From: Octopus bimaculoides
Taxonomy: Eukaryota
Length of the DNA: 32,550 bases
Direction: 5' to 3'
Assembly (NCBI RefSeq): GCF_001194135.2
Contig: NC_069008.1
Coordinates: 3,259,361-3,291,910 of the forward strand
Below the pieces are notes generated by a model. That model was not told the DNA's origin and searched no databases. It was given only the letters and a program-made list of their open reading frames with translations. The stretch's first letter is position 1. Each line of letters begins with the position of its first letter. Shown piece after piece: positions 770-32,550 of this stretch. Position numbers and translations under genes: made by a program.

Positions 770-1085
770 CAGACACTTCCCGTTATTGTGTTACATCAGT
801 TTGTTTTGTTACGGGGTCTGGTTGCAATCATCTGTTGTATTACTGTTTCTATTGTGTGATGTGTGTGTAATGCGAGTTGGTTTTACGACCTGTTGGTGGT
901 TGTTTATTTTAATGGATATTTACTATATAAAGTGTGGCTTGTGTTTGGGGAATGTTTTGTTTGGTTTGTATTTTTAAATTCACAGTGTCTTGCGTAGTAT
1001 GTGGGACTGTTTTTAGCAGGGCTATTTTGTGGATTGCGTCTATGTTTACGCATGCGTCTTTCACTATTTCAGCTACCAGCTCCAA
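770..1085 (-). mobile_element. 3' end (ORF C-terminus plus probable 3' UTR) of a second Dong/R4-type LINE copy
   Basis: Minus strand reads IHKIALLKT then, after a frameshift, HILRKTL*. This matches the C-terminus of the fragment at 7030-7358 (THILRRTLSI*). It lies 5' of the RT fragment on that strand, so it is a separate copy. Confidence 0.55.
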
Positions 1086-1532
1086 ATCCGAAAGAACCAA
1101 CCGGAAATCGTGAGTAATCTTCGTTTTCTTCGTTTTCTTTGTTGTTGTTGTTGTTGTTGTTGTTGTTGATGATCAAAAGGTGGACGAGAGTGACAAAACT
1201 AATGAGGTTGAATGGATCCACCCTGAGTACGCTTTTCTAAGTAGGAGGAACGAAACGAGAAAGATGGCGCTTCGTATACATTCGGGATGGCAGCGTAATC
1301 CAGGACGACTTTTGCGTGGGGTTTACTCCGAAATACCTTATGTATACTGCCCCCGCGATTCGGGATTCCCTTGATTAATTAATTAATTAATTAATTAATA
1401 TCTCTCCCTTCTATTTATATATCCCTTGATGTTGTAGTGTCTCCCTTTGATCGATGGAAACCCAGCTTGTTTTCTGTGCTGTATCTCGTCCTTTGAATAT
1501 TGTCCTCCATGTGGGCAATAAAAGAAAGCTGG

Positions 1533-1898: not shown

Positions 1899-2220
1899 GT
1901 TGTTGTTGGCACTCCGTCGCTTACGACGACGAGGGTTCCAGTTGATCCCGATCAACGGAAACAGCCTGCTCGTGAAATTAACGTGCAAGTGGTTGAGCAC
2001 TCCACAGACACGTGTACCCTTAACGTAGTTCTCGGGGATATTCAGTGTGACACAGTGTGTGACAAGGCTGGACCCTTTGAATTACAGGCACAACAGAAAC
2101 AGGAAGTAAGAGTGAGAGAAAGTTGTGGTGAAAGAGCACAGTAGGGTTCGCCACCATCTCCTGCTGGAGCCTCGTGAAGCTTTAGGTGTTTTTGCTCAAT
2201 AAACACTCACAACGCCCGGT
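1899..2220 (-). mobile_element. tRNA-headed SINE family A (head lost in the N gap)
   Basis: Reverse complement of the elements at 7886-8273 and 9754-10140, including the 3' end cgtaagcgacggagtgccaacaac. Confidence 0.9.
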
Positions 2221-3043: not shown

Positions 3044-4162
3044 GTGTTTTTATCCGCAAGAACGAAACGACTCTCACGCAACCAGAAACGCACAACATAT
3101 ATTCCGCAGTAAACCTCTTTTTGAACGACGAACGTGCCATTGGATACGCAAGCTTCTCAGCTTTCCACAATAATCAAAGTAGTTGTGCGAAGAGGTCGGG
3201 TGGAAGCAGTGCATACTGCGCAACACATGGCAAAGCAACCTATCTTCTCTGGAATAGATTGTACCTTGCACAATTAGAACAAGCGCTGGCTTCATACGAA
3301 GGCTTTACTGGTCTTTTTTATTATGACTGGACGAGTATCAAGATTCCCATGAACAAAATGACGTTTGTCAGTCATTATCATACAAAAAACTTTCTGCTAG
3401 AGGGCGTTCTGTTAGCCCTGGAGCAAGACGATTATTGCCGTTTTGCTATTAGGCTTGAAATGGCTCTCATACAATCTTTTTTCCACACCGGCATCAACCC
3501 ATATCGATTGGACGACATGGCTATATGTCACTACACAGTGAACGCTGATCGCATCTTCACCTTGTGGCAGCAACTTCAAGACTACAGAGGCAGGAGAGCG
3601 GCCATTAACTGTGCTTTGAACTTGCTCCAAAAACCGTTGGGATCGTTCGAACGTGTGTACAGGAATCGTATCAATCTCAGCAGGATAAACGCTGAACCGA
3701 TGCAGTTAGTGAATCCCGCTGTTTCATTGGGTTATCATTATGACGATCTTAGTCTCAATGGCATGAACATCTCAAGACTTAGCCAGCTTCTCCAAGAGCG
3801 CCGATCGAAACATAGATCTTTCGCCAGCTTTCATCTACGTGCAATCAAAACGTCGGCCAAATTCCGGGTCTTGGTTTGTGTGCCGCGCAAAGGTAAAACC
3901 GCGCATGTGCTGACAGACGACTGTAACAACGATGCAGGTTCGTTCTTCGTTCTGGGAGGAGATGACATCCACCAACAGAAGTGGGACTACGGCTATCCGT
4001 ACCTCTTCGAAATCACCGATGTAGTGGAATCACTCGGTGTCCCGCTAGATGGCGACTACTACGTTCATGCAGATATATCTGCCCTGAATGGCACACAGCT
4101 CCGAGATGACATCATACCGGCACCCACAGTGTCCTATATCCCAGGCCGAAGACACACAAACG
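3044..4162 (+). CDS. Hemocyanin-like functional unit 1 (degenerate copper site; C-terminal domain resembles FU-a)
   Basis: Acceptor tttcttctctttccag at 3028-3043, donor G|gtaagt at 4162/4163. Translation has FU motifs IRKN, AFH, CATHG, YYDWT, LLALEQDDYCRF, DRIFTLWQ, AINCA, GYHYDDLSLNG, AGSFFVLGG and PTVSYIPG. The LLWNR, EMALIQ and YTVNADR segments lack ligand His. Confidence 0.93.
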
Positions 4163-4249
4163 GTAAGTAGTGAACGCTGTTCACGGTTTCGATCCCACAC
4201 CCGTCTCCAAGGGCCAACAACAAAGAACAACAGAAGGTTTTCTTTTATT

Positions 4250-4720
4250 CGTGGTCACTGACTTGCTGGAGATAGCAGTCAAATTTCTGTCTAGAATAAA
4301 GCCTGTATTAAATGATCATGCCAAGAAGACTCTTCGTGACCATTAGATTTGGTAAAAATAGCAGTCAAATCTCGCTCAACAGGACTATGCTGTCTTATGT
4401 ATGTGCCTTGGGTCCTTAATTCACGATTGGGTCCCAGAGTCTTTGTCGTAATGTACGGTGTTTTAATTTTAGCTTATTTATGTTTTTGTAGACAACTAAA
4501 CTTAGCAGATCCTCTCCCTCCGGGAAAAAGAAAGCGAGAGAAGGAGAGAGAGAGAGAAAGAAAGAGGAAGGGAGAGAGAGAGAAAAATATAAAGATGGCC
4601 TCACTTGTATTTTATTTATCGACCCCGAAAGAGCGTGTGCATATGTAGTTAAGGGCTAACGGCATCTATTTAGTCGTCTCACCAGACAGAAATAGCTGCC
4701 AAACTTCCTTTAAATTAGAA
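4250..4720. repeat. Intronic unclassified repeat fragments sharing an ATAGC(A/T)G(T/C)CAAA motif, plus an AG-rich tract
   Basis: gatagcagtcaaat (about 4272), aatagcagtcaaat (about 4358) and aatagctgccaaac (about 4692); GA-rich tract 4525-4590. Confidence 0.35.
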
Positions 4721-4919
4721 CCAACTGACTTATATACACTTTTATAGGTATATATATGATGGCCATCCACTCGTGACTGAGGAAGATCATTGCTGACCTT
4801 CAGAAACATTATGTGCTCTAGGACGAACTTATATTTTGCATTTGCGGCTCCGTTGGTGGCTAATGAGCCCTGCTCTTGACAAGCACGTGTATATATGTGT
4901 ATATACGTGTATATGTATG

Positions 4920-4960
<41 letters not shown>

Positions 4961-4974
4961 GTGTGTGTGTGTAT

Positions 4975-5010
<36 letters not shown>

Positions 5011-5326
5011 GTATATGTATATACACACACACACATATATATACATATATATGTGTGATGTGTGTGGGGGGCGTGTTTCTGTATGTGTTTGCTTCCCATC
5101 ACCACTTGACAATCGGCGTCGGTGTGTTTACATCCCCCCAAAACTTAGCGTTTTGGCATACATAATTAGATACACACACTCACACACACACACACACATA
5201 TATATATATACGTATACACACACATACACACACATGTATATATATTTGTGTGTGTATAAATGCATATATGTGTCTATGTGTGTGTGTATAAAATTATATA
5301 TTCTTTCTTAAATTTTAATGTTACAG

Positions 5327-5813
5327 AGAAGAAATTGGTGAAGAAACTGCGCAGAAAGTTCCCCAAGAAACTGCACAAAATATTTCCCAAGCGGAAAAAC
5401 GTCAATGATTTAACTAAAAAAGAACGACTCGAACTAAGATTAGCCATGATGTGTTTCGTCAAGGACAAATCCATGCAAGGTTACCAAATTTTAGCAGAAT
5501 ATTCCGGACTGTTGAAGAAATGTCCCCAACCGGAATCAACCTATCAACGGGTTTGCCGCCTCCATGGAAACCCGGTCTTCTTGCATTGGAACCGATTAGC
5601 TGTGAAGCAATTTGAGAATTCACTCAGTGAGTGCGGAACCAGTGTTGCTTTACCTTATTGGGACTGGACAGATCCTGTGAACACCATACCGTTGTTTTTA
5701 TCGAACCACTCCTTCTATGATCCAGACTGGAAACAGCTTAGATTGAACCCGTTTTCCCGTCTCTCAGTTGATTTCATGTCCTATAATGAAGAGGCTTCGA
5801 GAAATACAGAATG
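5327..5813 (+). CDS. Cationic linker plus N-terminal half of hemocyanin-like functional unit 2
   Basis: Acceptor ttttaatgttacag ending 5326 (phase 1); donor TG|gtaagt at 5813/5814 (phase 2). Motifs RKNVNDLT, GYQ, CP, VCRLHG, HWNRL, LPYWDWT and NPF. Confidence 0.93.
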
Positions 5814-6149
5814 GTAAGTCTTGATTCAGTTGTAGCTTTTCGTTGTTTGTTAATGTTATCTCTACAGATTTTTTTTTATAGAAATTACAATCAGCATCGA
5901 TTTTTGCTGGATATAATTTGTATAGAAGATCTGTAAAGATGGTCTTAACAAGGAACGTAAAGTACTGTGCTAACAAGGTATTATTTTGTTCTTTTATTCT
6001 TTTATTTATCAACCCTAGGACTTTATTCCTCTATTTATTCGACCCCAGGACTTTATTCCTCTACCTCTCCATAATTCACGTTTGAAACCTGATCCATATT
6101 TTAATGCTTTGTCGTTGATGATGGCTGATTTATATTTTCTTTGCTTCAG

Positions 6150-6952
6150 GGTCACCGAGTATCTTGGGGACGAGAAACACGGGGCCCTCTTTTCCCAGCT
6201 ACTGCTCGCTTTTGAACAGGAGGACTTCTGCGATTTCGAAATCCAACTGGAAGTTCTACAAAACAGCTTCTACAACATTTTCTTGGTACCGGAATTCCAA
6301 ACGTTGGACCACATGACGTTCGATCCTCTGTTCTGGATGCATAGCAATCAAGTGGATCGTCTGTGGGCAACGTGGCAGGCTTTGCAGTTCCATCGGGGCC
6401 TCTCGTCAGCGGCCAACTGTATACACTCTGACCTTCACCATCCTTTGAAACCGTTCGCCGACGGTCCGCCTATCAACACTAATTTGATTACCTTTGAACA
6501 CTCGACGCCCGATCAAGTGCACGACTACCGAAACAATTTGCATTACGAGTTCGAGTCTCTTAAACTAGGAGCTGATATGTCTATCGATATCCCTGATCTT
6601 CATACTCGTATCGAGGATCTGAAAAAAAAAGACCGTGTTTTTATTGGGTTCTTACTGCGCGGCATCAAGACGTCTGCCAAGATCCAGGTAACGGTGAATG
6701 AAAACTTCAGGGACAATGATAAGAGGAGTGTGCCCACAATTCTGGCTTCCATATTGGTGTACGGAAGTCCTCAAGAGAACGAGTGGAGTTTCGATCGCTA
6801 TTACAAACACGAAATAACCCACAGCCTGTTACTTTTGGACTATAAATACGATGACAAGATCCCTTTAAATGTATATGCCGAAGACATCAACGGTACAACT
6901 CTACCAGACGCTGTTTTACCCGAACCAGTAATTATATACGTACCTAACAAAG
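6150..6952 (+). CDS. C-terminal part of hemocyanin-like functional unit 2 (degenerate CuB site)
   Basis: Acceptor ttttctttgcttcag ending 6149 completes the split TG|G Trp codon; donor G|gtaggt at 6952/6953 (phase 1). Motifs AFEQEDFCDFEIQ, FDPLF, VDRLWATWQALQ, ANC, PLKPF, DRVFIGFLL and SFDRYYKHEIT. Confidence 0.93.
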
Positions 6953-7029
6953 GTAGGTATTCCTTTGTGATTCCATTTGCTTTTGGGTTGTACATTTGTT
7001 TAATGTTCTTCCTACAGGTAAGATGAACG

Positions 7030-7358
7030 ATCCAGGCTAATCGACCAGATGTAGTCATTAAAGACAGTAAAGAAAATACTTGTGGAATAATAGATGTAGG
7101 TGTTCCCACAGACAAAAAATATAACTGTAAAGGAATTTGACAAATTAAGTAAATAGAAGGACAAGGAAATTGAAATACAAAAGATGTGGAATCTTAAAGC
7201 GACAACTGTTCCTGTTATTGTGGGTGCCCTAGGTATGATAAGAAAGTTATGTCAGAAACATCTAGATAATATCCCAGGAGAATCGTGTCTCAGAGAAATC
7301 CAAAAAGATTCAGCTGACAAGTATTACCCACATCCTTAGAAGAACCCTATCCATTTAA
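7030..7358 (+). mobile_element. Restriction-like endonuclease (C-terminal) fragment of a Dong/R4-type LINE, inside intron 3
   Basis: Translates as IQANRPDVVIKD..IIDVGVP..KEFDKLSK*KDKEIEIQKMWNLKATTVPVIVGALG..THILRRTLSI*. This is the RPD..D..P..KE..K pattern of RLE non-LTR elements, with frameshifts and a stop. Confidence 0.85.
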
Positions 7359-7885
7359 AAGTATGTGTTGTATTACATGAAGATATTCTGCTACTGCCAC
7401 TTCCCTGCCATCCGCCCCCCCCCCCCAAGGTTTCAGTCATATTGTAACATCTCTTATCTTTCACTTGCCCTAGGACGCTGGGTGTGTCACGGTGTGTTTC
7501 TAAAATTTATAATTACCTTTGATATTATTAATTATTAATTATATATATATATANNNNNNNNNNNNNNNNNNNNNNNNNNNNNNNNNNNNNNNNNNNNNNN
7601 NNNNNNNNNNNNNNNNNNNNNNNNNNNNNNNNNNNNNNNNNNNNNNNNNNNNNNNNNNNNNNNNNNNNNNNNNNNNNNNNNNNNNNNNNNNNNNNNNNNN
7701 NNNNNNNNNNNNNNNNNNNNNNNNNNNNNNNNNNNNNNNNNNNNNNNNNNNNNNNNNNNNNNNNNNNNNNNNNNNNNNNNNNNNNNNNNNNNNNNNNNNN
7801 NNNNNNNNNNNNNNNNNNNNNNNNNNNNNNNNNNNNNNNNNNNNNNNNNNNNNNNNNNNNNNNNTATGTATGTATGTATGTATGT

Positions 7886-8273
7886 GTGGAGGCGCAATGG
7901 CCCAGTGGTTAGGGCAGTGGACTCGCGGTCATAGGATCGCGGTTTCGATTCCCAGACCGGGCGTTGTGAGTGTTTATTGAGCGAAAACACCTAAAGCCCC
8001 ACAAGGCTCCGGCAGGGGATGGTGGCGAACCCTGCTGTACTCTTTCGCCACAACTCTCTCTCACTCTTTCTTCCTGTTTCTGTTGTGCCTGTAATTTCAA
8101 AGGGGTCAGCCTTGTCACATTCTGTGTCACGCTGAATATCCCCGAGAACTACGTTAAGGGTACACGTGTCTGTGGAGTGCTCAGCCACTTGCACGTTAAT
8201 TTCACGAGCAGGCTGTTCCGTTGATCGGATCAACTGGAACCCTCGACGTCGTAAGCGACGGAGTGCCAACAAC
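7886..8273 (+). mobile_element. tRNA-headed SINE family A, full length, intron 3
   Basis: A-box TGGCCCAGTGG (7898-7908), B-box-like GGTTTCGATTCC (7941-7952) and a CAA-type 3' end. Near-identical to 9754-10140. The head resembles tRNA-Arg; the family name is not verified. Confidence 0.9.
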
Positions 8274-8386
8274 ATGTATATATGTATGTATGTGTGTGTA
8301 TCTATGTATGTGTATAAGTGTGTGTATTTATGTTTGAATGTGTGCGTGTATTTGTCTCGCCTCTAATATGTGCTGTCTTATTGCAG

Positions 8387-9650
8387 ATAATTCAAAATGG
8401 CCGCTACAATATTTGCCGACGCACGAAAGGAAACTGGTGGACACTCTCACGAGTATGGAAGAAGTGGAGATTCGAGAAGCAATGCGCATGTTCAATGCTG
8501 ACAAGACGGCCACCGGGTTCCAGAGAATTTCGGCTATGCACGGCTCGCATCTCTGGTGCCCGTATTTAGCTGCTCCAGTCAAACACATGTGTTGTCACCA
8601 CAACAGCAAGACCTTCCTTCCGTGGCACAGACTACTTATGATGAACTTCGACGATGGCTTGCGAAGATACGGTAACAGGCTTGGAGCCCCGTACTGGGAT
8701 TGGACAAGGCCCTTTTCGGCCTTACCTAAGCTTGCAACTGATAAGGTCTACAGAGATTTGAGCGGGAAGCTGAGAGAGAACCCTTTCTTACGTACGCATA
8801 TTGATTACTTGGGAGTGGATACTGTGAGAGATGTGCAAGCGAAATTATTTCACCCAAGTTATCGCCGACGTGTGTACGAATGTGTTCTAAACGCCCTGGA
8901 GTACATGGAATTTGAGCGTTTCCAGTCCGGACTGGAACATGTTCATAACCTGATACATGTGTTGGTTGGTGGCTCGGCTACCTACTCAATGTCTTGTCTG
9001 GAGTACGCTGCTTATGATCCGATTTTTTTTCTCCATCACAGCATGGTGGATCGCGTGTGGGCCATTTGGCAAGAAATGTATTACGCATTTTTCCCAGATC
9101 CTTCTTATGGGTCGACTAGTCGTTACGGCACAGAATACAATGAAACTTTGAGCCCGTTCAACATTACTTCTGTCAACGTGTATCAGACGACCAGGAAATA
9201 TTCTGTCCCCTGGATGACGTTCGATTACGGAACCAACTTCCAGTATGGTTATGACAGTCTGACTATCAACGGAAAATCTGTGGCGAAGTTGAGCTGGGAA
9301 ATCCAGGAGCGACAGAGAAGAGACCGCTGGTTCATTATAGCTTACGACTTGAAAGACATCAAACAATCATACATTGTTAAATTCTACATAACGCTGACGG
9401 ACACCGCTGGAAAGGCATTTAACTCCAGTGACGAGATTTTTCCTGCGGGTGAGATATACGTGTTTAACGGTAAACGGGCGAGGCCGTGGAAGACAAACGT
9501 CACATACAGGATCGAGATAACAGACTTGAGTAGAAGACAACGTCTTTGGAAGGATAACCATTTTGTTCTGAAGCACAGAGTATTTGACTTACCTGGCAAG
9601 GAAATGCACAACGTGACTCTACGCGCCAGTGTGGTGTTTGTGCCGAGAAA
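8387..9650 (+). CDS. Hemocyanin-like functional unit 3 with intact type-3 dicopper motifs (stop at 9652-9654 if the 9651 donor is not used)
   Basis: Acceptor ctgtcttattgcag ending 8386 (phase 1). CuA motifs AMHG, CCHH and PWHR; CuB motifs EHVHNLIH and DPIFFLHHSMVDR; also GAPYWDWT, NPF and YGYDSL. Ends VFVPR-AA|gtaagt. Confidence 0.95.
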
Positions 9651-9700
9651 GTAAGTATATATATATTACCATATAAAACGTACTGTTGATGCTGCTTTAG

Positions 9701-9753
<53 letters not shown>

Positions 9754-10140
9754 GTGGAAGCGCAATGGCCCAGTGATTAGGGCAGCGGACTCGCGGTCAA
9801 AGGATCGCGGTTTCGATTCCCAGACCAGGCATTGTGAGTGTTTATTGAGCGAATACACCTAAAAGCTCCACGAGGCTCCGGCAGAGGGTTGGTGGCGAAC
9901 CCTGCTGTACTCTTCCACCACAACTTTCTCTCACTCTTACTTCCTGTTTCTGTTGTGCCTGTATTTCAAAGGGTCAGCCTTGTCACATTCTGTGTCACGC
10001 TGAATATCCCCGAGAACTACATTAAGGGTACACGTGTCTGTGGAGTGCTCAGCCACTTGCACGTTAATTTCACGAGCAGGGTGTTCTGTCGATCGGTTCG
10101 ACTGGAACCCTCGACGTCGTAAGCGACGGAGTGCCAACAA
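9754..10140 (+). mobile_element. tRNA-headed SINE family A, full length, intron 4, inserted in a (CTA)n tract
   Basis: Visually more than 90% identical to 7886-8273; flanked by (CTA)n at 9700-9753 and 10150-10238, with a (CAA)n tail. Confidence 0.9.
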
Positions 10141-10148
10141 CAACAACA

Positions 10149-10238
<90 letters not shown>

Positions 10239-10239
10239 G

Positions 10240-10770
10240 GCTAACTACCGCTGTTACTAATACAGCCACTGCTTCTGCTACAAATGCTACTGCTAGTCCA
10301 GACTAACCTTTACTACTCCAGCTACACCATTAACCTACTACCACTAAAACCACCACTACAACATCCCTCACAGTTCCACCACCACGTCCACCGCCACGTC
10401 CACCGCCAACACCGTCAACAATAACGCCGCCCTTATCTCTACTTCAGCCAAAACTGCCGCAGTTACGAACATTAATACAACCATTAGTACTATCACCACC
10501 ACCACCTTCCCTTTTACCTTCACCGCTACCACCACCACCACCACCACCACCACCACCACCACTTCTACCACTACCACTACCACCACCNNNNNNNNNNNNN
10601 NNNNNNNNNNNNNNNNNNNNNNNNNNNNNNNNNNNNNNNNNNNNNNNNNNNNNNNNNNNNNNNNNNNNNNNNNNNNNNNNNNNNNNNNNNNNNNNNNNNN
10701 NNNNNNNNNNNNNNNNNNNNNNNNNNNNNNNNNNNNNNNNNNNCACCACCACCACCGCCGCCATAACCCC
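10240..10770. repeat. (ACC/CTA)-rich low-complexity trinucleotide tract
   Basis: Degenerate CCA/CTA/CCG repeats running into an N gap. Confidence 0.85.
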
Positions 10771-10813
10771 CACTACCGTATATTTTAACCATTTCTCTGA
10801 TTCTCATTTGCAG

Positions 10814-10871
10814 ACCCGATCGCCGATGTAACGAGTTCGCTGGACGCGATGTTTGTAGTGTTGTCCAGTAG
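10814..10871 (+). CDS. Putative terminal exon adding KPDRRCNEFAGRDVCSVVQ*
   Basis: Strong acceptor catttctctgattctcatttgcag ending 10813. Only the phase-2 frame required by the 9650/9651 donor gives an 18-codon extension, ending TAG at 10869-10871. No homology support is available. Confidence 0.55.
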
Positions 10872-12406: not shown

Positions 12407-12480
12407 ACTCTCTCCATCTGCAAAATATTTGCTGTGTTCATCATCATCATCACTATCACTATCATTATTATTAATTCTTA

Positions 12481-12689
12481 TTTCTTTATTGCCCACAAGG
12501 GGCTAAACATAGAGGGACAAACAAGGACAGATAAAGGGATTAAGTCGATTACATCGACCCCAGTGCGTAACTGGTATTTAATTTATCGAGCCCGAAAGGA
12601 TGAAAGGCAAAGTAGACCTCGGCGGAATTTGAACTCAGAACGTAAAGACAGACGAAATACCGCTAAGCATTTCGCCCGGCGTGCTAACG
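12481..12689 (-). mobile_element. tRNA-headed SINE family B
   Basis: Reverse complement of 15668-15899, with core cctttcggg(g/c)tcgataaattaa(g/a)taccagttacgcactggggtcgat. Confidence 0.85.
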
Positions 12690-13452
12690 NNNNNNNNNNN
12701 NNNNNNNNNNNNNNNNNNNNNNNNNNNNNNNNNNNNNNNNNNNNNNNNNNNNNNNNNNNNNNNNNNNNNNNNNNNNNNNNNNNNNNNNNNNNNNNNNNNN
12801 NNNNNNNNNNNNNNNNNNNNNNNNNNNNNNNNNNNNNNNNNNNNNNNNNNNNNNNNNNNNNNNNNNNNNNNNNNNNNNNNNNNNNNNNNNNNNNNNNNNN
12901 NNNNNNNNNNNNNNNNNNNNNNNNNNNNNNNNNNNNNNNNNNNNNNNNNNNNNNNNNNNNNNNNNNNNNNNNNNNNNNNNNNNNNNNNNNNNNNNNNNNN
13001 NNNNNNNNNNNNNNNNNNNNNNNNNNNNNNNNNNNNNNNNNNNNNNNNNNNNNNNNNNNNNNNNNNNNNNNNNNNNNNNNNNNNNNNNNNNNNNNNNNNN
13101 NNNNNNNNNNNNNNNNNNNNNNNNNNNNNNNNNNNNNNNNNNNNNNNNNNNNNNNNNNNNNNNNNNNNNNNNNNNNNNNNNNNNNNNNNNNNNNNNNNNN
13201 NNNNNNNNNNNNNNNNNNNNNNNNNNNNNNNNNNNNNNNNNNNNNNNNNNNNNNNNNNNNNNNNNNNNNNNNNNNNNNNNNNNNNNNNNNNNNNNNNNNN
13301 NNNNNNNNNNNNNNNNNNNNNNNNNNNNNNNNNNNNNNNNNNNNNNNNNNNNNNNNNNNNNNNNNNNNNNNNNNNNNNNNNNNNNNNNNNNNNNNNNNNN
13401 NNNNNNNNNNNNNNNNNNNNNNNNNNNNNNNNNNNNNNNNNNNNNNNNNNNN

Positions 13453-15667: not shown

Positions 15668-15899
15668 TTGGTGAGCTGTCAGAAACGTTAGCATGCCGGG
15701 CGAAATGCCTAGTGGTATTTCGTCTGCCGCTACGTTCTGAGTTCAAATTCCGCTGACTTTGCCTTTCATCCTTTCGGGGTCGATAAATTAAGTACCAGTT
15801 ACGCACTGGGGTCGATATAATCGACTTAATCCGTTTGTCTGTCATTGTTTGTCCCCTCTGTGTGTAGCCCCTTGTGGGCAGTAAAGAAATAGGTATTTC
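15668..15899 (+). mobile_element. tRNA-headed SINE family B
   Basis: Head ggtgagctgtcagaaacgttagc, B-box-like GAGTTCAAATTC (about 15739), core tttcatcctttcggggtcgataaattaagtaccag. The core recalls the Meta/MESC-type SINE domain (from memory, unverified). Confidence 0.85.
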
Positions 15900-22467: not shown

Positions 22468-22516
22468 ATCAACGTAAGTGGTACTTTTTCCATCACCCCC
22501 CCCCCACACCAAAAAA

Positions 22517-22631
22517 AAGGATGAAAGGGAAAATCGAACTCTGCGGAGTTTGAACTCAGATCGTGAAGACAGAGGAATATACTGCTAAGCATCTTCATGG
22601 AGTGCTAAAAATTCTACCAGCTCGCCGCCTT
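22517..22631 (-). mobile_element. SINE family B, 5' fragment
   Basis: ggatgaaagg...tttgaactcaga...ctaagcat...ccagctcgccgcctt matches the family B head. Confidence 0.7.
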
Positions 22632-23706
22632 AAAAACTACCAGTGATTTCATATGAGATCCCTTAAAAATTACAAACTTCGTAATTATCTGTCAATATTT
22701 ACACATATCTAACCTTTTTGCTATATCTACTAGGTATATTTCTCTGATATTCAAATGAGGTTTGCTAATTTTTCACCCAATATCTCGCTTATTTCNNNNN
22801 NNNNNNNNNNNNNNNNNNNNNNNNNNNNNNNNNNNNNNNNNNNNNNNNNNNNNNNNNNNNNNNNNNNNNNNNNNNNNNNNNNNNNNNNNNNNNNNNNNNN
22901 NNNNNNNNNNNNNNNNNNNNNNNNNNNNNNNNNNNNNNNNNNNNNNNNNNNNNNNNNNNNNNNNNNNNNNNNNNNNNNNNNNNNNNNNNNNNNNNNNNNN
23001 NNNNNNNNNNNNNNNNNNNNNNNNNNNNNNNNNNNNNNNNNNNNNNNNNNNNNNNNNNNNNNNNNNNNNNNNNNNNNNNNNNNNNNNNNNNNNNNNNNNN
23101 NNNNNNNNNNNNNNNNNNNNNNNNNNNNNNNNNNNNNNNNNNNNNNNNNNNNNNNNNNNNNNNNNNNNNNNNNNNNNNNNNNNNNNNNNNNNNNNNNNNN
23201 NNNNNNNNNNNNNNNNNNNNNNNNNNNNNNNNNNNNNNNNNNNNNNNNNNNNNNNNNNNNNNNNNNNNNNNNNNNNNNNNNNNNNNNNNNNNNNNNNNNN
23301 NNNNNNNNNNNNNNNNNNNNNNNNNNNNNNNNNNNNNNNNNNNNNNNNNNNNNNNNNNNNNNNNNNNNNNNNNNNNNNNNNNNNNNNNNNNNNNNNNNNN
23401 NNNNNNNNNNNNNNNNNNNNNNNNNNNNNNNNNNNNNNNNNNNNNNNNNNNNNNNNNNNNNNNNNNNNNNNNNNNNNNNNNNNNNNNNNNNNNNNNNNNN
23501 NNNNNNNNNNNNNNNNNNNNNNNNNNNNNNNNNNNNNNNNNNNNNNNNNNNNNNNNNNNNNNNNNNNNNNNNNNNNNNNNNNNNNNNNNNNNNNNNNNNN
23601 NNNNNNNNNNNNNNNNNNNNNNNNNNNNNNNNNNNNNNNNNNNNNNNNNNNNNNNNNNNNNNNNNNNNNNNNNNNNNNNNNNNNNNNNNNNNNNNNNNNN
23701 NNNNNN

Positions 23707-24693: not shown

Positions 24694-25823
24694 CATACAT
24701 ACATACTACAGCTTCTCTGTCCAGATTGCAAATTCAAGTTTATACCCGTAATTATTGGGGCACTGGGATATGTAACACATACCACTCTTGAGAAATTAGG
24801 CTTCTCAAAACCAGAATGGGGAAAGCTAATTCGAAGACTACAGATCTAATCCATCACTGGAACTGTAAAAATCTCTAAAACTTTCCTGAAGTCTATCATT
24901 TGAATATATATGAGCATATCTAAATATGCAACTATATGGATGAGAATACATACATAAAACATACAAATCTGCACATACATACATACATACATACATACAT
25001 ACATACATACATACTAAAAATACCCTGTTGTTGATGTCGAAATTCCAATGAAGGAGCCTTGGATCTAGGTTAGAAACCGGTTCTTTCTCTATTGGCAAGA
25101 AAGCTTGAAATAAACTGAATAATGACATTCACATATGTGTGTATGTTTGTGTGTGTATATATTTATCTATGTACTTATGCATTTATATATTTATGTATGT
25201 GTATGGATGGATGGATGGATGGATGGATGGATGGATGGATGGATGGATGGATGGATAGACGGGCGGATGGGCATCGATATGCTAATACAATAATTTACTC
25301 TCCGAAACATAGATACAACCGGTTATCTAACACAAATACACAAATCATGATTATATATACATACACACACACACGTGCAGGCACTCACAGACGTATACAC
25401 ACATGTGAATGTCTGTTGTGCGTGACGTTATATAAAAGTTACATAAACTGTTCTCGATCAATTTACTGCTATCATTGTCGAAGAACTTGAGCAGGAAATA
25501 TATTGGTTAACAGTAGATGGGCGGCAAGAATAATCCATTTATGAAATTCTTTAAAATACTCCAGATATCGTGGAGAGTGAATTGAGCGAATATTCTAAAT
25601 GTTATGGTTGTATATCTCGTATGACGAACTCATAACATAAAATTGGTAATAAAACAATATGTCGAACCTTAATACTATGGCGGCATTTTACTTTTGTGGA
25701 GTAAACAGCACATATGCTTTCACAACAACGTACAAAAATTTATAAGGTAATGTCTGTATGTGTATATATGTTGCGAAGTCGAACTCGAGTGAAATTTAAA
25801 CGTTATTACAATGATCGATAATG

Positions 25824-25854
<31 letters not shown>

Positions 25855-25856
<2 letters not shown>

Positions 25857-26400
25857 GCCCGGATGCAGTACCAGGCAGTGGCTCTCATGGCTTCTGATCT
25901 TAATTGATTGGAAGTGTTATCAAGTACATTGTTTTGTCTTGGTATAAAAGATGGGCTACAGCAAATATTCTGCCCCATACCACAGATTTGCTTGTCAATT
26001 GTTTGACCTTAACCAGTTGAGCATGTCCCTTGGTGGCTGACGATATGTGCATCTCTGATCACGAACAGAAGTAGTGGGGGAGCATCATAGCCATGTGTTG
26101 AGAGGAATTCTTTGGGGTTTGAATAATTCACCTTTGAAAACGTGGGTGTTTTGTTCAACATCCTTAAAGAAACCTTATTCAGGGACCTTTTGAACAGGAT
26201 GGGCTACTCAACCTGCAGAAAAATCTAACTGGGCCCCACCTGCGAGGTCATGCGCTGTTTATCTTGATATGAGATCACTATGTTGCACACACATGGTTGT
26301 GATGCATGTGCCTGGTGTATCCTTATCAGACAGGTAGTCATGATGGGTATACTGGGCTTCGTATATTTGTACCCCAGTGTCACTTTGATGGCATGCACTG
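25855..26400. repeat. Probable unclassified interspersed repeat bounded by (AAT)n tracts
   Basis: A complex 550-bp block with no ORF, sharply flanked by (AAT)n at 25817-25853 and 26412-26460. No second copy lies in the window, so its repeat status is inferred. Confidence 0.35.
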
Positions 26401-26411
26401 CTCTCTCACTC

Positions 26412-26460
<49 letters not shown>

Positions 26461-26463
<3 letters not shown>

Positions 26464-27520
26464 TCTACTATAGTCACAAGGCTTGAAATTTTGGGGGAGT
26501 GGGGTAGTCGATTACATCGACCCAATATGTAACTGGTACGTATTTCCTCGATCCCGAATGGACGACTGGCAAGGTCGACCTCGACTGAATAATCGATAAT
26601 TATAACAAAAACAACAGCTACAACAACAATCACAAGAACAACAACAATCTTTTCTGCTATAGGCACAAGGCCTGAAATTTGGGGGAGGAGTAAGTGTGTT
26701 ACATCGAACCCAGTACGTACAACTCTCTAATGCACGGACTCTGGATGATTTCATGCAGGTCTGTTTCGTCGCCCTGCATGCATCTCAGGCAGGTTTGGCT
26801 GTTGGCACGTCCATGCTTGAAGTGCTCGTCTCGAACAGGCAATACTCTCCTGTAGCACTACCAAGCTAAAGATTTTTGAAAATTGTCCGTGATCTACAAC
26901 TCGACAGCGCCCCCGAATGAATCCTAGACCATCGTCTCTCATAATCTCAGCTAGCCCTCTAGAGAAATCATGGGTTGTTTTCCTGCTAACAGTTTTGTCC
27001 AACTGGTACAATGCAGTGAGCGTCTGTCAACATTCTAGATGCCAAGCGCCCAATCTTGGTTTATGTTCGACCCATGTCTGCAGCTCCGTCAATGAGATGA
27101 GTTGCGGATAACCTCTTCTTCTTTTGGTACAAAGCCTGAAATTTAAGGGCAGGGGGTTTGTCGATTACATCTACCTCAGTGCTCGACTGGTACTTATTTT
27201 TATCGACCCCGAAAGGATGGATAGCAAAGTCGACCTCGGCGGCATTTGAACACAAAACAAATAAGGACGGACCAAATGCCGCGATGAATTTTGCCCGGTG
27301 CATTATAATAATATAAGTTTCAAATTTTGAGGCAAGGCCAGCAATTTGGTGGAAAAGGGACAAAGTTAGTATTAGGACCCCCAGTACTTGACTGGTACTT
27401 TATTTTATCAATCTAGATAGAATGATAGGGAAAAAAAAATGTCGACCACAGTAAGATTTGAAACCAGAACGTATAGACCGTTCGTTCGATGCTCTAACGA
27501 TTCTGTAAACTCGCCGCCTT
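26461..27520 (-). mobile_element. Cluster of four same-strand SINE B-like copies (about 26461-26587, 26653-26720, 27120-27303, 27313-27520) around a LINE fragment
   Basis: Repeated aaggc(c/t)tgaaattt..ggg..gtcgattacatcgacc..actggtact..tcga(c/t)ccc..aaagtcgacctcg motifs. Confidence 0.75.
26723..26887 (-). mobile_element. Decayed L1/Tx1-type LINE ORF2 C-terminal (zf-RVT-like) fragment
   Basis: Minus-strand frame reads DNFQKSLAW*CYRRVLPVRDEHFKHGRANSQTCLRCMQGDETDLHEIIQSPCIRE. This fits the W..LP..G..CxxC..ET..H zinc-knuckle region, with one in-frame stop. Confidence 0.65.
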
Positions 27521-31980: not shown

Positions 31981-32550
31981 TGAAGTCTTGTACGTTCATC
32001 AGAAGTCTTGTACCTTCATCAAAAGTCGTGTACTTTCATCAGAAGTCTTGTACTTTCATCAGAAGTCTTGTACTTTCATCAGAAGTCTTGTACTTTCATC
32101 AGAAGTCGTGTACTTTCATCAGAAATCGTGTACTTTCATCAGAAGTCGTGTACTTTCATCAGAAGTCGTGTACTTTCATCAGAAGTCTTGTACTTTCATC
32201 AGAAGTCTTGTACTTTCATCAGAAGTCTTGTACTTTCATCAGAAGTCTTGTACTTTCATCAGAAGTCGTGTACTTTCATCAGAAGTCTTGTACTTTCATC
32301 AGAAGTCTTGTACTTTCATCAGAAGTCGTGTACTTTCATCAGAAGTCTTGTACTTTCAGTAGAAGTCGTGTACTTTCATTAGAAGTCGTGTACTTTCATC
32401 AGAAGTCGTGTACTTTCATCAGAAGTCTTGTACTTTCATCAGAAGTCTTGTACTTTCATCAGAAGTCTTGTACTGTCATCAGAAGTCGTGTACTTTCATC
32501 AGAAGTCTTGTACTTTCATCAGAAGTCTTGAACTTTCATCAGAAGTCTTG
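31981..32550 (+). repeat. 20-bp minisatellite AGAAGTC(T/G)TGTACTTTCATC, 28.5 units, running off the window end
   Basis: Exact 20-bp periodicity from 31981, a T/G dimorphism at unit position 8, and scattered single substitutions. Confidence 0.97.

Follow-up and report, generated by a model that had tools for sequence, protein, structure and literature searches.

The stretch of DNA analysed here (hereafter the window) comprises 32,550 nucleotides (nt) of the Octopus bimaculoides genome (contig NC_069008.1 of assembly GCF_001194135.2, positions 3,259,361 to 3,291,910 of the forward strand; 40% GC, 15 N gaps), and carries a gene encoding three consecutive hemocyanin functional units (FUs), here termed FU1, FU2 and FU3. 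A preliminary description, made from the sequence alone, had placed these units in one open frame with GT-AG splice sites, and re-splicing confirms this: the five exons from FU1 to the terminal exon give a frame of 1242 codons, open up to the TAG at 10869-10871, whose translation is identical at every residue to residues 31-1272 of the 1272-amino-acid (aa) RefSeq record XP_052833582.1 (Octopus bimaculoides), automatically named "hemocyanin G-type, units Oda to Odg-like". All five exons are bordered by AG and GT, with GTAAGT or GTAGGT at four of the five donors, and the spliced frame contains exactly the 12 N-x-S/T sequons first reported. The phase-1 linker introns described earlier are borne out for the three introns between leader and FU1, FU1 and FU2, and FU2 and FU3; the FU2-internal intron and the last intron are in phase 2. 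An older partial model (UniParc UPI000695983F, 1045 aa) has the same internal junctions. The features of the locus are listed below, with unit derivations as judged from homology; coordinates are those of the window unless prefixed L002, for the O. bimaculoides locus in CM046628.1 (GCA_001194135.2), in which window base 1 is base 13395, or L001, for the orthologous O. vulgaris locus (OX597841.1; 40 kb without any N).

L002 10001-10051, ~3.4 kb before the first base of the window: signal-peptide exon, from the O. vulgaris and RefSeq models
1073-1109, forward strand: small exon 2, 37 nt, encoding LPAPNPKEPTGN plus 1 base, phase-1 donor; joins the signal-peptide exon outside the window to FU1
3044-4162, forward strand: FU1 exon, 372 aa, FU-a-derived, degenerate copper site
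4162 plus 5327-5400, forward strand: FU1-FU2 linker, EKKLVKKLRRKFPKKLHKIFPKRKN, first codon starting at 4162
5327-5813, forward strand: FU2 exon 1, linker and CuA half, FU-b-derived, phase-2 donor
6150-6952, forward strand: FU2 exon 2, CuB half and beta-sandwich, FU-b-derived
7554-7864: assembly gap within the FU2/FU3 intron
8387-9650, forward strand: FU3 exon, 421 aa, FU-c-derived, phase-2 donor
10588-10743: assembly gap in a (CAC)n/(TAC)n microsatellite of the last intron
10814-10871, forward strand: terminal exon, 58 nt, encoding PDRRCNEFAGRDVCSVVQ and closed by the TAG stop (10869-10871)

The preliminary description had named assembly error as a possible source of the His losses, and the same exon chain, with the same substitutions, is present in the independent O. 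vulgaris assembly. The O. vulgaris orthologue (CAI9743244.1, 1271 aa) is 89% identical; its coding sequence, rebuilt from seven L001 exons, translates to exactly that record, and its splice positions match those of the window. L001 is colinear with the window, and the exons flanking both gap sites are contiguous in it; because this gap-free locus is spliced in the same way and yields CAI9743244.1, no coding sequence is hidden in the gaps of the window, and the frame across them is confirmed. An assembly gap of 2.8 kb directly precedes window base 1; over the 20,871 bases where they overlap, the window and L002 are identical. Octopus sinensis has a partial orthologue covering FU1 and FU2, with identical His losses.

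Both ends of the gene could be placed. In the O. vulgaris and O. bimaculoides RefSeq models the first exon encodes MAI(I/V)TVLQLSALLQIFW, a hydrophobic leader resembling a signal peptide; this is the 5' exon whose existence had been anticipated, and it lies upstream of the window. It is joined to FU1 through the exon at 1073-1109, which was located by tblastn with the O. vulgaris protein together with reading of the splice sites, is also present in XP_052833582.1 and has its O. vulgaris counterpart at L001 13385-13421. A start codon inside the window, at 960-1110, was considered and rejected, the only in-frame Met giving a poor leader and the stretch being accounted for by the spliced 37-nt exon. 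FU1 is placed as FU-a is in canonical hemocyanin, i.e. right after the signal peptide, and the predicted product runs from signal peptide through a 13-aa leader and FU1-FU2-FU3 to an 18-aa tail containing Cys. With a canonical query, no hemocyanin homology beyond the FU1-FU3 exons was found in the window (to 21 kb downstream of the stop), in the 10 kb upstream in L002 or in the 10 kb on either side in L001. The suggestion that more units could lie upstream of the window is refuted by the position of the signal-peptide exon and by these flanks.

At the 3' end, the FU3 exon does not reach the place where the c-d linker intron would normally lie; it has a phase-2 donor and is followed by the 58-nt exon encoding PDRRCNEFAGRDVCSVVQ. 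The corresponding O. vulgaris exon (L001 30281-30338) has the stop position and two Cys identical, and the exon is also part of the RefSeq model; with the stop after this tail exon and no FU homology downstream, FU3 is indeed the last unit, as first supposed. An in-frame TAA lies exactly across the GTAAGT donor of the last intron (9649-9654) in both species. Retention of this intron would end the protein at ...VFVPRK, 18 aa earlier and without both tail cysteines.

Each of the three units matches Pfam Tyrosinase (PF00264) and Haemocyan_bet_s (PF14830), with E values of 4e-8 to 3e-33, and their identity to canonical units overall is ~39-46%. By tblastn the best matches of FU1, FU2 and FU3 are, respectively, FU-a (39% identity), FU-b (41-42%) and FU-c (39%) of squid hemocyanin, and the best match of FU3 among PDB sequences is squid hemocyanin FU-c (307 bits, against 193-235 bits for other units). 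The per-unit phylogeny that had been proposed as a check was run as a neighbour-joining (NJ) tree of 92 FUs from 12 hemocyanins (200 bootstraps), and grouped FU1 with FU-a in at least 99%, FU2 with FU-b in ~95% and FU3 with FU-c in ~96% of bootstraps. As judged from these matches, the units are derived from hemocyanin FU-a, FU-b and FU-c. An AlphaFold2 (AF2) model of FU1 (mean predicted local distance difference test score, pLDDT, 69; predicted template modelling score, pTM, 0.76) keeps the helical core, has a confident beta-sandwich and superposes on solved hemocyanin FUs with a template modelling (TM) score of ~0.8, so that the fold of FU1 appears, in the model, to be retained.

The copper sites were compared with a reference of 79 canonical FUs, in which all ten site columns examined, including the six ligand His, the thioether Cys and the Leu plug, are invariant. 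O. sinensis FU-g served to calibrate the columns: the O. dofleini FU-g sites, which we take to be His2543, His2562, His2571, His2671, His2675, His2702, Cys2560 and Leu2830, fall on six His, a Cys and a Leu when an offset of 23 is applied. The states found in the octopus units are as follows.

H1: FU1 kept; FU2 Ser (5503-5505); FU3 kept (8539)
Thioether Cys: FU1 Ala (3220-3222); FU2 Arg (5557-5559); FU3 kept (8593)
H2: FU1 kept; FU2 kept; FU3 kept (8599)
H3: FU1 Asn (3253-3255); FU2 Asn (5590-5592); FU3 kept (8626)
H4: FU1 Gln (3472-3474); FU2 Gln (6259-6261); FU3 kept (8944)
H5: FU1 His beside a 2-aa insertion, probably kept; FU2 Tyr (6271-6273); FU3 kept (8956)
H6: FU1 Tyr or deleted, depending on alignment (3532-3534); FU2 Ser (6343-6345); FU3 kept (9037)
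Leu plug: FU1 kept; FU2 Tyr (6760-6762); FU3 Phe (9463-9465), in both species
FC..NC disulfide pair: FU1 kept; FU2 kept; FU3 lost (Glu and Arg/Pro)

FU1 has therefore lost three of its six His together with the thioether Cys, FU2 five of six together with the Cys, and FU3 none of these seven residues. FU1 additionally carries a deletion of ~40 aa between CuA and CuB and another of ~8-10 aa. The earlier statement that FU1 and FU2 lack most of their ligand His holds for FU2 and overstates the case for FU1, where half are gone; likewise FU3, described as intact, is so in its ligands and not in its second shell, where the plug Leu is replaced by Phe and the disulfide is lost. All site changes are identical in O. 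vulgaris, and those of FU1 and FU2 also in O. sinensis. Lacking the residues that build a dicopper centre, FU1 and FU2 are predicted to be unable to bind O2, and at most one dicopper site is expected to form per chain. In FU3 the CuA and CuB His sets are complete and canonically spaced, as in the phenoloxidase/tyrosinase class; with regard to substrate access, the beta-sandwich is present and bears Phe at the position of the otherwise invariant plug Leu.

Selection was assessed from the ratio of non-synonymous to synonymous substitution (dN/dS; Nei-Gojobori, window against O. vulgaris, dS ~0.21). The ratio is 0.27 for FU1, 0.26 for FU2, 0.20 for FU3, 0.25 for the tail and 0.24 for the whole gene, and each unit shows a significant excess of synonymous changes (Fisher p = 4e-8 for FU1, 3e-10 for FU2 and 9e-15 for FU3). 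The alpha domains give 0.18, 0.21 and 0.17, respectively, so that the copper-less ones are constrained like that of FU3, and the beta domains are looser (0.29-0.79). The two species share every one of the 12 sequons, and 19 of the 20 Cys. These values, which for FU1 and FU2 lie far from the ratio of 1 named beforehand as the mark of decay, agree with the original view that the locus is probably not a pseudogene, and on this pattern of substitution we conclude that it is not.

Two characters of the product set it apart from canonical units. The mature chain, computed at ~145 kDa with its 12 conserved N-glycan sequons, has an isoelectric point (pI) of ~8.3, against 5.4-5.6 for canonical FU a-c, and of the 40 aa of the linker EKKLVKKLRRKFPKKLHKIFPKRKN, 17 are K/R, whereas the canonical a-b linker is acidic, with 6 K/R and 9 D/E. 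The octopus linker contains several dibasic motifs; constraint on it is relaxed (dN/dS 0.65 for 33 codons) and its basic charge is retained in O. vulgaris. Such a strongly basic segment may be a binding or cleavage site.

The age of the gene was approached through trees and intron positions. In a distance tree of concatenated units a, b and c (corrected distances, 500 bootstraps), the octopus gene branches from the base of the coleoid hemocyanins, later than Nautilus, with 98% bootstraps and on a branch of 0.75 substitutions per site; NJ trees of the individual FUs are unstable in depth (coleoid, cephalopod or mollusc-wide). The FU2-internal intron, which is in phase 2, precedes the conserved LAFE motif by exactly 18 residues, and the internal intron of canonical O. 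sinensis FU-b has the same phase and the same 18-residue spacing; neither the three-unit gene nor the canonical O. sinensis gene has an intron within FU-a or FU-c. Since the internal introns of octopod and Nautilus hemocyanin genes are reported to differ completely (Schäfer et al. 2021, PMC7931591) and the FU-b intron is common to the three-unit gene and the octopod genes, the duplication post-dates the split from Nautilus. On this account the gene arose when, after that split, a coleoid-type hemocyanin gene was duplicated; the copy was then truncated 3' of FU-c and gained a new phase-2 donor and a short terminal exon. No orthologue outside Octopus was found by a word-indexed search or by an exhaustive HMMER search of 50%-identity representatives, a weak negative given that cephalopod coverage in these sets is uncertain.

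The nearest parallel so far described is BgHcl-1 of the snail Biomphalaria glabrata, a protein of three FUs (a, b and h), each with one His missing, that the albumen gland produces and that occurs in the egg-mass fluid (Pena and Adema 2016, PMC5201427). Like the octopus gene, BgHcl-1 and Bulinus globosus hemocyanin-like 1 encode secreted proteins of three rather than 7-8 FUs with phase-1 linker introns, and in BgHcl-1, too, other residues stand in place of canonical copper His and of the thioether Cys, and the protein is nevertheless conserved. The definition of planorbid hemocyanin-like (Hcl) proteins, i.e. fewer FUs, replaced His and conservation (PMC5201427), describes the octopus gene equally. 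The two differ in composition (a-b-h in the snail, a-b-c in the octopus), and in the distribution of His losses, of which BgHcl-1 has one per FU whereas FU1, FU2 and FU3 have three, five and none of six. In our site table each BgHcl-1 unit has lost one His and the thioether Cys, and keeps the Leu plug and the disulfide. In Biomphalaria, moreover, hemoglobin has taken the place of hemocyanin; Octopus continues to rely on the canonical hemocyanin. Common descent of the two genes is contradicted by the a-b-c composition, the clustering with coleoid units and the octopod-type intron layout; the nearest relatives of the BgHcl-1 units are heterobranch gastropod FUs (Aplysia, Bradybaena) and those of the octopus units coleoid FUs, and the conjecture that the octopus case is convergent with the snail protein is thereby upheld.

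With the canonical octopod hemocyanin (O. dofleini/O. sinensis G-type, units a-g) the gene shares the FU fold, the N-terminal signal peptide, the phase-1 linker introns and the exon layout of FU-a, FU-b and FU-c including the phase-2 intron internal to FU-b. It differs in having three rather than seven FUs, a basic rather than acidic product and a new C-terminal exon, two FUs without copper ligands, Phe (FU3) and Tyr (FU2) at the plug position and one disulfide lost from FU3. In Argonauta hians, hemocyanin FU-f (P0164/P0013) shows H2 as Thr, H5 as Asn, H6 as Asp and the thioether Cys as Ser; this may be a copper-less unit in a respiratory hemocyanin, or the annotation of a paralogue, and it sits in a full-length seven-FU protein whereas the octopus gene is a truncated paralogue. 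A further candidate, Bradybaena similaris P0004 (BsWGS_17573, 1288 aa, three intact FUs), was rejected as a three-unit protein, being almost certainly a split gene model whose neighbour on the same contig, BsWGS_17572, is a 2180-aa hemocyanin piece. Among arthropods, insect hexamerins and crustacean pseudo-hemocyanin/cryptocyanin likewise derive from a duplicated type-3 copper protein that lost its ligands and took a non-respiratory role; they belong to a non-orthologous family and have lost copper binding wholly, whereas the octopus gene keeps one complete site. No description of the octopus gene was found in the literature, whether by accession or under the topic of cephalopod hemocyanin-like proteins, and a squid skin proteomics paper encountered in the search proved irrelevant to it.

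Taken against the features of a respiratory subunit, the gene has the domain build of an FU (a type-3 copper alpha domain and a beta-sandwich) and the phase-1 linker introns; it does not have 7-8 FUs per chain, there being three between signal peptide and stop in two species, nor six His and a thioether Cys in every FU, since FU1 and FU2 are deficient and only FU3 is complete. The proposal that this is not the respiratory pigment is accordingly sustained, by the three units, the single possible dicopper site at most, the signal peptide ahead of FU1 and the stop after FU3. Because it is without FU-d to FU-g and would carry one site per 145 kDa, the protein would be expected neither to form the canonical decamer nor to carry O2 efficiently, and it is almost certainly not an oxygen carrier. 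We regard it as very probable that the locus is a real, conserved, non-respiratory three-unit hemocyanin paralogue in Octopus, whose product is, to judge from its predicted features, most likely a secreted, non-respiratory glycoprotein.

As to what this product does, the preliminary description named egg coat or egg fluid, ink, mucus, sclerotisation and immunity as plausible settings. In the reading that we prefer, FU3 could supply a single dicopper function, i.e. a latent phenoloxidase-type activity or O2 binding, access to its site would be gated by the Phe that replaces the universal Leu plug, and FU1 and FU2 would act as copper-free binding or scaffold modules. Along one and the same long branch, FU3 kept all seven of its copper-site residues and FU1 and FU2 lost theirs, which suggests that the FU3 site is in use. 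The change of plug Leu to Phe suggests altered access to the FU3 site; Phe is the blocking residue of arthropod hemocyanins and of many phenoloxidases. Taken alone, this combination of an FU3 oxidase with scaffold units is a possibility that we advance tentatively. The same reserve attaches to the wider proposal that the gene encodes the first cephalopod hemocyanin-like protein, perhaps dating from the coleoid base, with FU3 as a Phe-gated extracellular phenoloxidase zymogen or O2-dependent enzyme and two copper-free former hemocyanin units as binding modules: it may be right, and is quite likely to need revision.

Several points weigh against this interpretation, or against parts of it. The placement as sister to coleoid hemocyanins may be long-branch attraction, given the long branch and the distance method; a count of exclusively shared residues leans slightly towards one octopod hemocyanin lineage (9, against 3 and 2), and the duplication could instead be octopod-specific. 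The dN/dS of 0.79 for the FU1 beta domain, which is based on just 6.5 synonymous differences, is the least constrained value obtained. The AF2 model of FU1 has low confidence only at the former active-site loops (pLDDT <50) and at the deletion, and the alignment behind it consists mostly of canonical FU-a sequences, which biases it towards the canonical fold. Transcription is plausible, and is indicated only through selection and through two RNA-informed annotation pipelines, that of O. vulgaris having drawn on Iso-Seq, RNA-seq, protein alignments and ab initio models (PMC10700109).

The chief alternative is a protein that functions without any copper chemistry, such as a storage, structural, lectin-like or immune glycoprotein on the model of arthropod hexamerins and pseudo-hemocyanins or of the snail egg-fluid Hcl-1, in which the FU3 site would be a relic not yet lost and from whose cationic linker antimicrobial peptides could be released. 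The copper-less alpha domains are as constrained as that of FU3, the protein is basic with many sequons and 17 K/R in the 40-aa linker, FU3 is without an otherwise invariant disulfide and Leu plug, and BgHcl-1, with one His missing per FU, is an egg-mass-fluid protein (PMC5201427), all of which this explanation would accommodate. Set against it is the retention of the six His and thioether Cys of FU3 in both species; because these ligands are kept, and the dN/dS of FU3 is the lowest at 0.20, while FU1 and FU2 lost theirs, selection appears to act on the FU3 copper site itself. We judge a protein of this kind rather unlikely, and a contender all the same.

A modifier subunit, co-assembling with or capping canonical hemocyanin and so tuning its assembly or cooperativity, would fit the origin of the units from the wall-forming FU-a, FU-b and FU-c and the retention of the overall fold. 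Its identity to canonical units of just ~39-46%, a pI of 8.3 against ~5.5 and the deletion in FU1 argue against such packing, and we consider this role improbable. That the locus is a decaying hemocyanin fragment, i.e. a pseudogene or recently dead duplicate whose frame is open by chance, might be suspected from the loss of copper ligands in two of three units and from the FU1 deletions of ~40 and ~8-10 aa. It is made very improbable by a frame of ~1270 codons that is open in two species at a dS of ~0.21 with all splice sites conserved, by dN/dS values of 0.20-0.27 (p <1e-7 per unit) that extend to the copper-less alpha domains, and by the conservation of sequons and cysteines. An assembly or annotation artefact, in which part of a conventional seven-unit hemocyanin owes its losses or truncation to errors or gaps, could appeal to a draft window with 15 gaps, two of them inside the gene, and has next to no likelihood when the substitutions, exon chain, signal-peptide exon and stop recur in the independent gap-free O. 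vulgaris assembly (and FU1-FU2 in O. sinensis), the flanks hold no further hemocyanin homology and the canonical hemocyanin genes are separate loci.

The surroundings of the gene are rich in repeats. An element of ~380 bp resembling a short interspersed nuclear element (SINE) occurs in three copies, at 7888-8264 (forward), 9756-10132 (forward) and 1911-2220 (reverse, cut by a gap at 2221), with a tRNA-like head (TGGCCCAGTGGTTAGGGC ... GGTTTCGATTCCC) and ~89% column identity; two copies flank the FU3 exon in the same orientation, and several copies lie in introns of the O. vulgaris gene. ARAGORN called no tRNA in the window. Dense microsatellites of the types (TA)n/(TG)n, (TAC)n, (CAC)n and (GA)n occupy 4890-5060, 5160-5300, 9700-9755, 10137-10587 and much of 11100-31300, and most of the assembly gaps of the window lie inside them. 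A family of ~200-bp repeats is found downstream (12473-12689, 15670-15899, 22516-22637, 26506-26590 and 27160-27298), and in O. vulgaris forms a tandem array in intron 1 of the orthologue (L001 10167-11126). On the reverse strand at 25818-26454, 15 kb downstream of the gene, a stretch of 637 bp is 92.6% identical, reversed, to L001 12242-12876, likewise in intron 1 of the O. vulgaris orthologue, and probably represents a mobile element or rearranged sequence. At the end of the window (31982-32550) lies a tandem array of a 20-bp unit, GAAGTCTTGTACTTTCATCA, in 28.5 copies with 95% match, which runs past the window end. In the 21 kb downstream of the gene no convincing open reading frame was found, only simple repeats and SINE-like elements.

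The gene is already in databases under a misleading name, since in number of FUs and in ligands per FU it departs from a respiratory subunit, and it needs to be re-labelled: names such as "hemocyanin G-type ... -like" or "hemocyanin subunit 1" can mislead counts of hemocyanin isoforms in transcriptomics and proteomics. Descriptions of truncated Hcl proteins with replaced ligands are confined to planorbid snails, in which O2 transport has ceased to depend on hemocyanin; Octopus, by contrast, is an animal that breathes with hemocyanin and keeps a separate three-unit paralogue under purifying selection. Should the wider proposal above be correct, the conversion of hemocyanin units to copper-free modules would have taken place independently in molluscs, in parallel with the hexamerins of arthropods, and the Phe gate of FU3 would be of arthropod or plant style in place of the universal molluscan Leu. 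With two stripped units and one complete unit in a single chain, the gene constitutes a natural experiment on the use of copper-free hemocyanin units, and bears on how second-shell residues (Leu plug versus Phe, and the lost disulfide) tune oxygen carriage versus oxidase chemistry.

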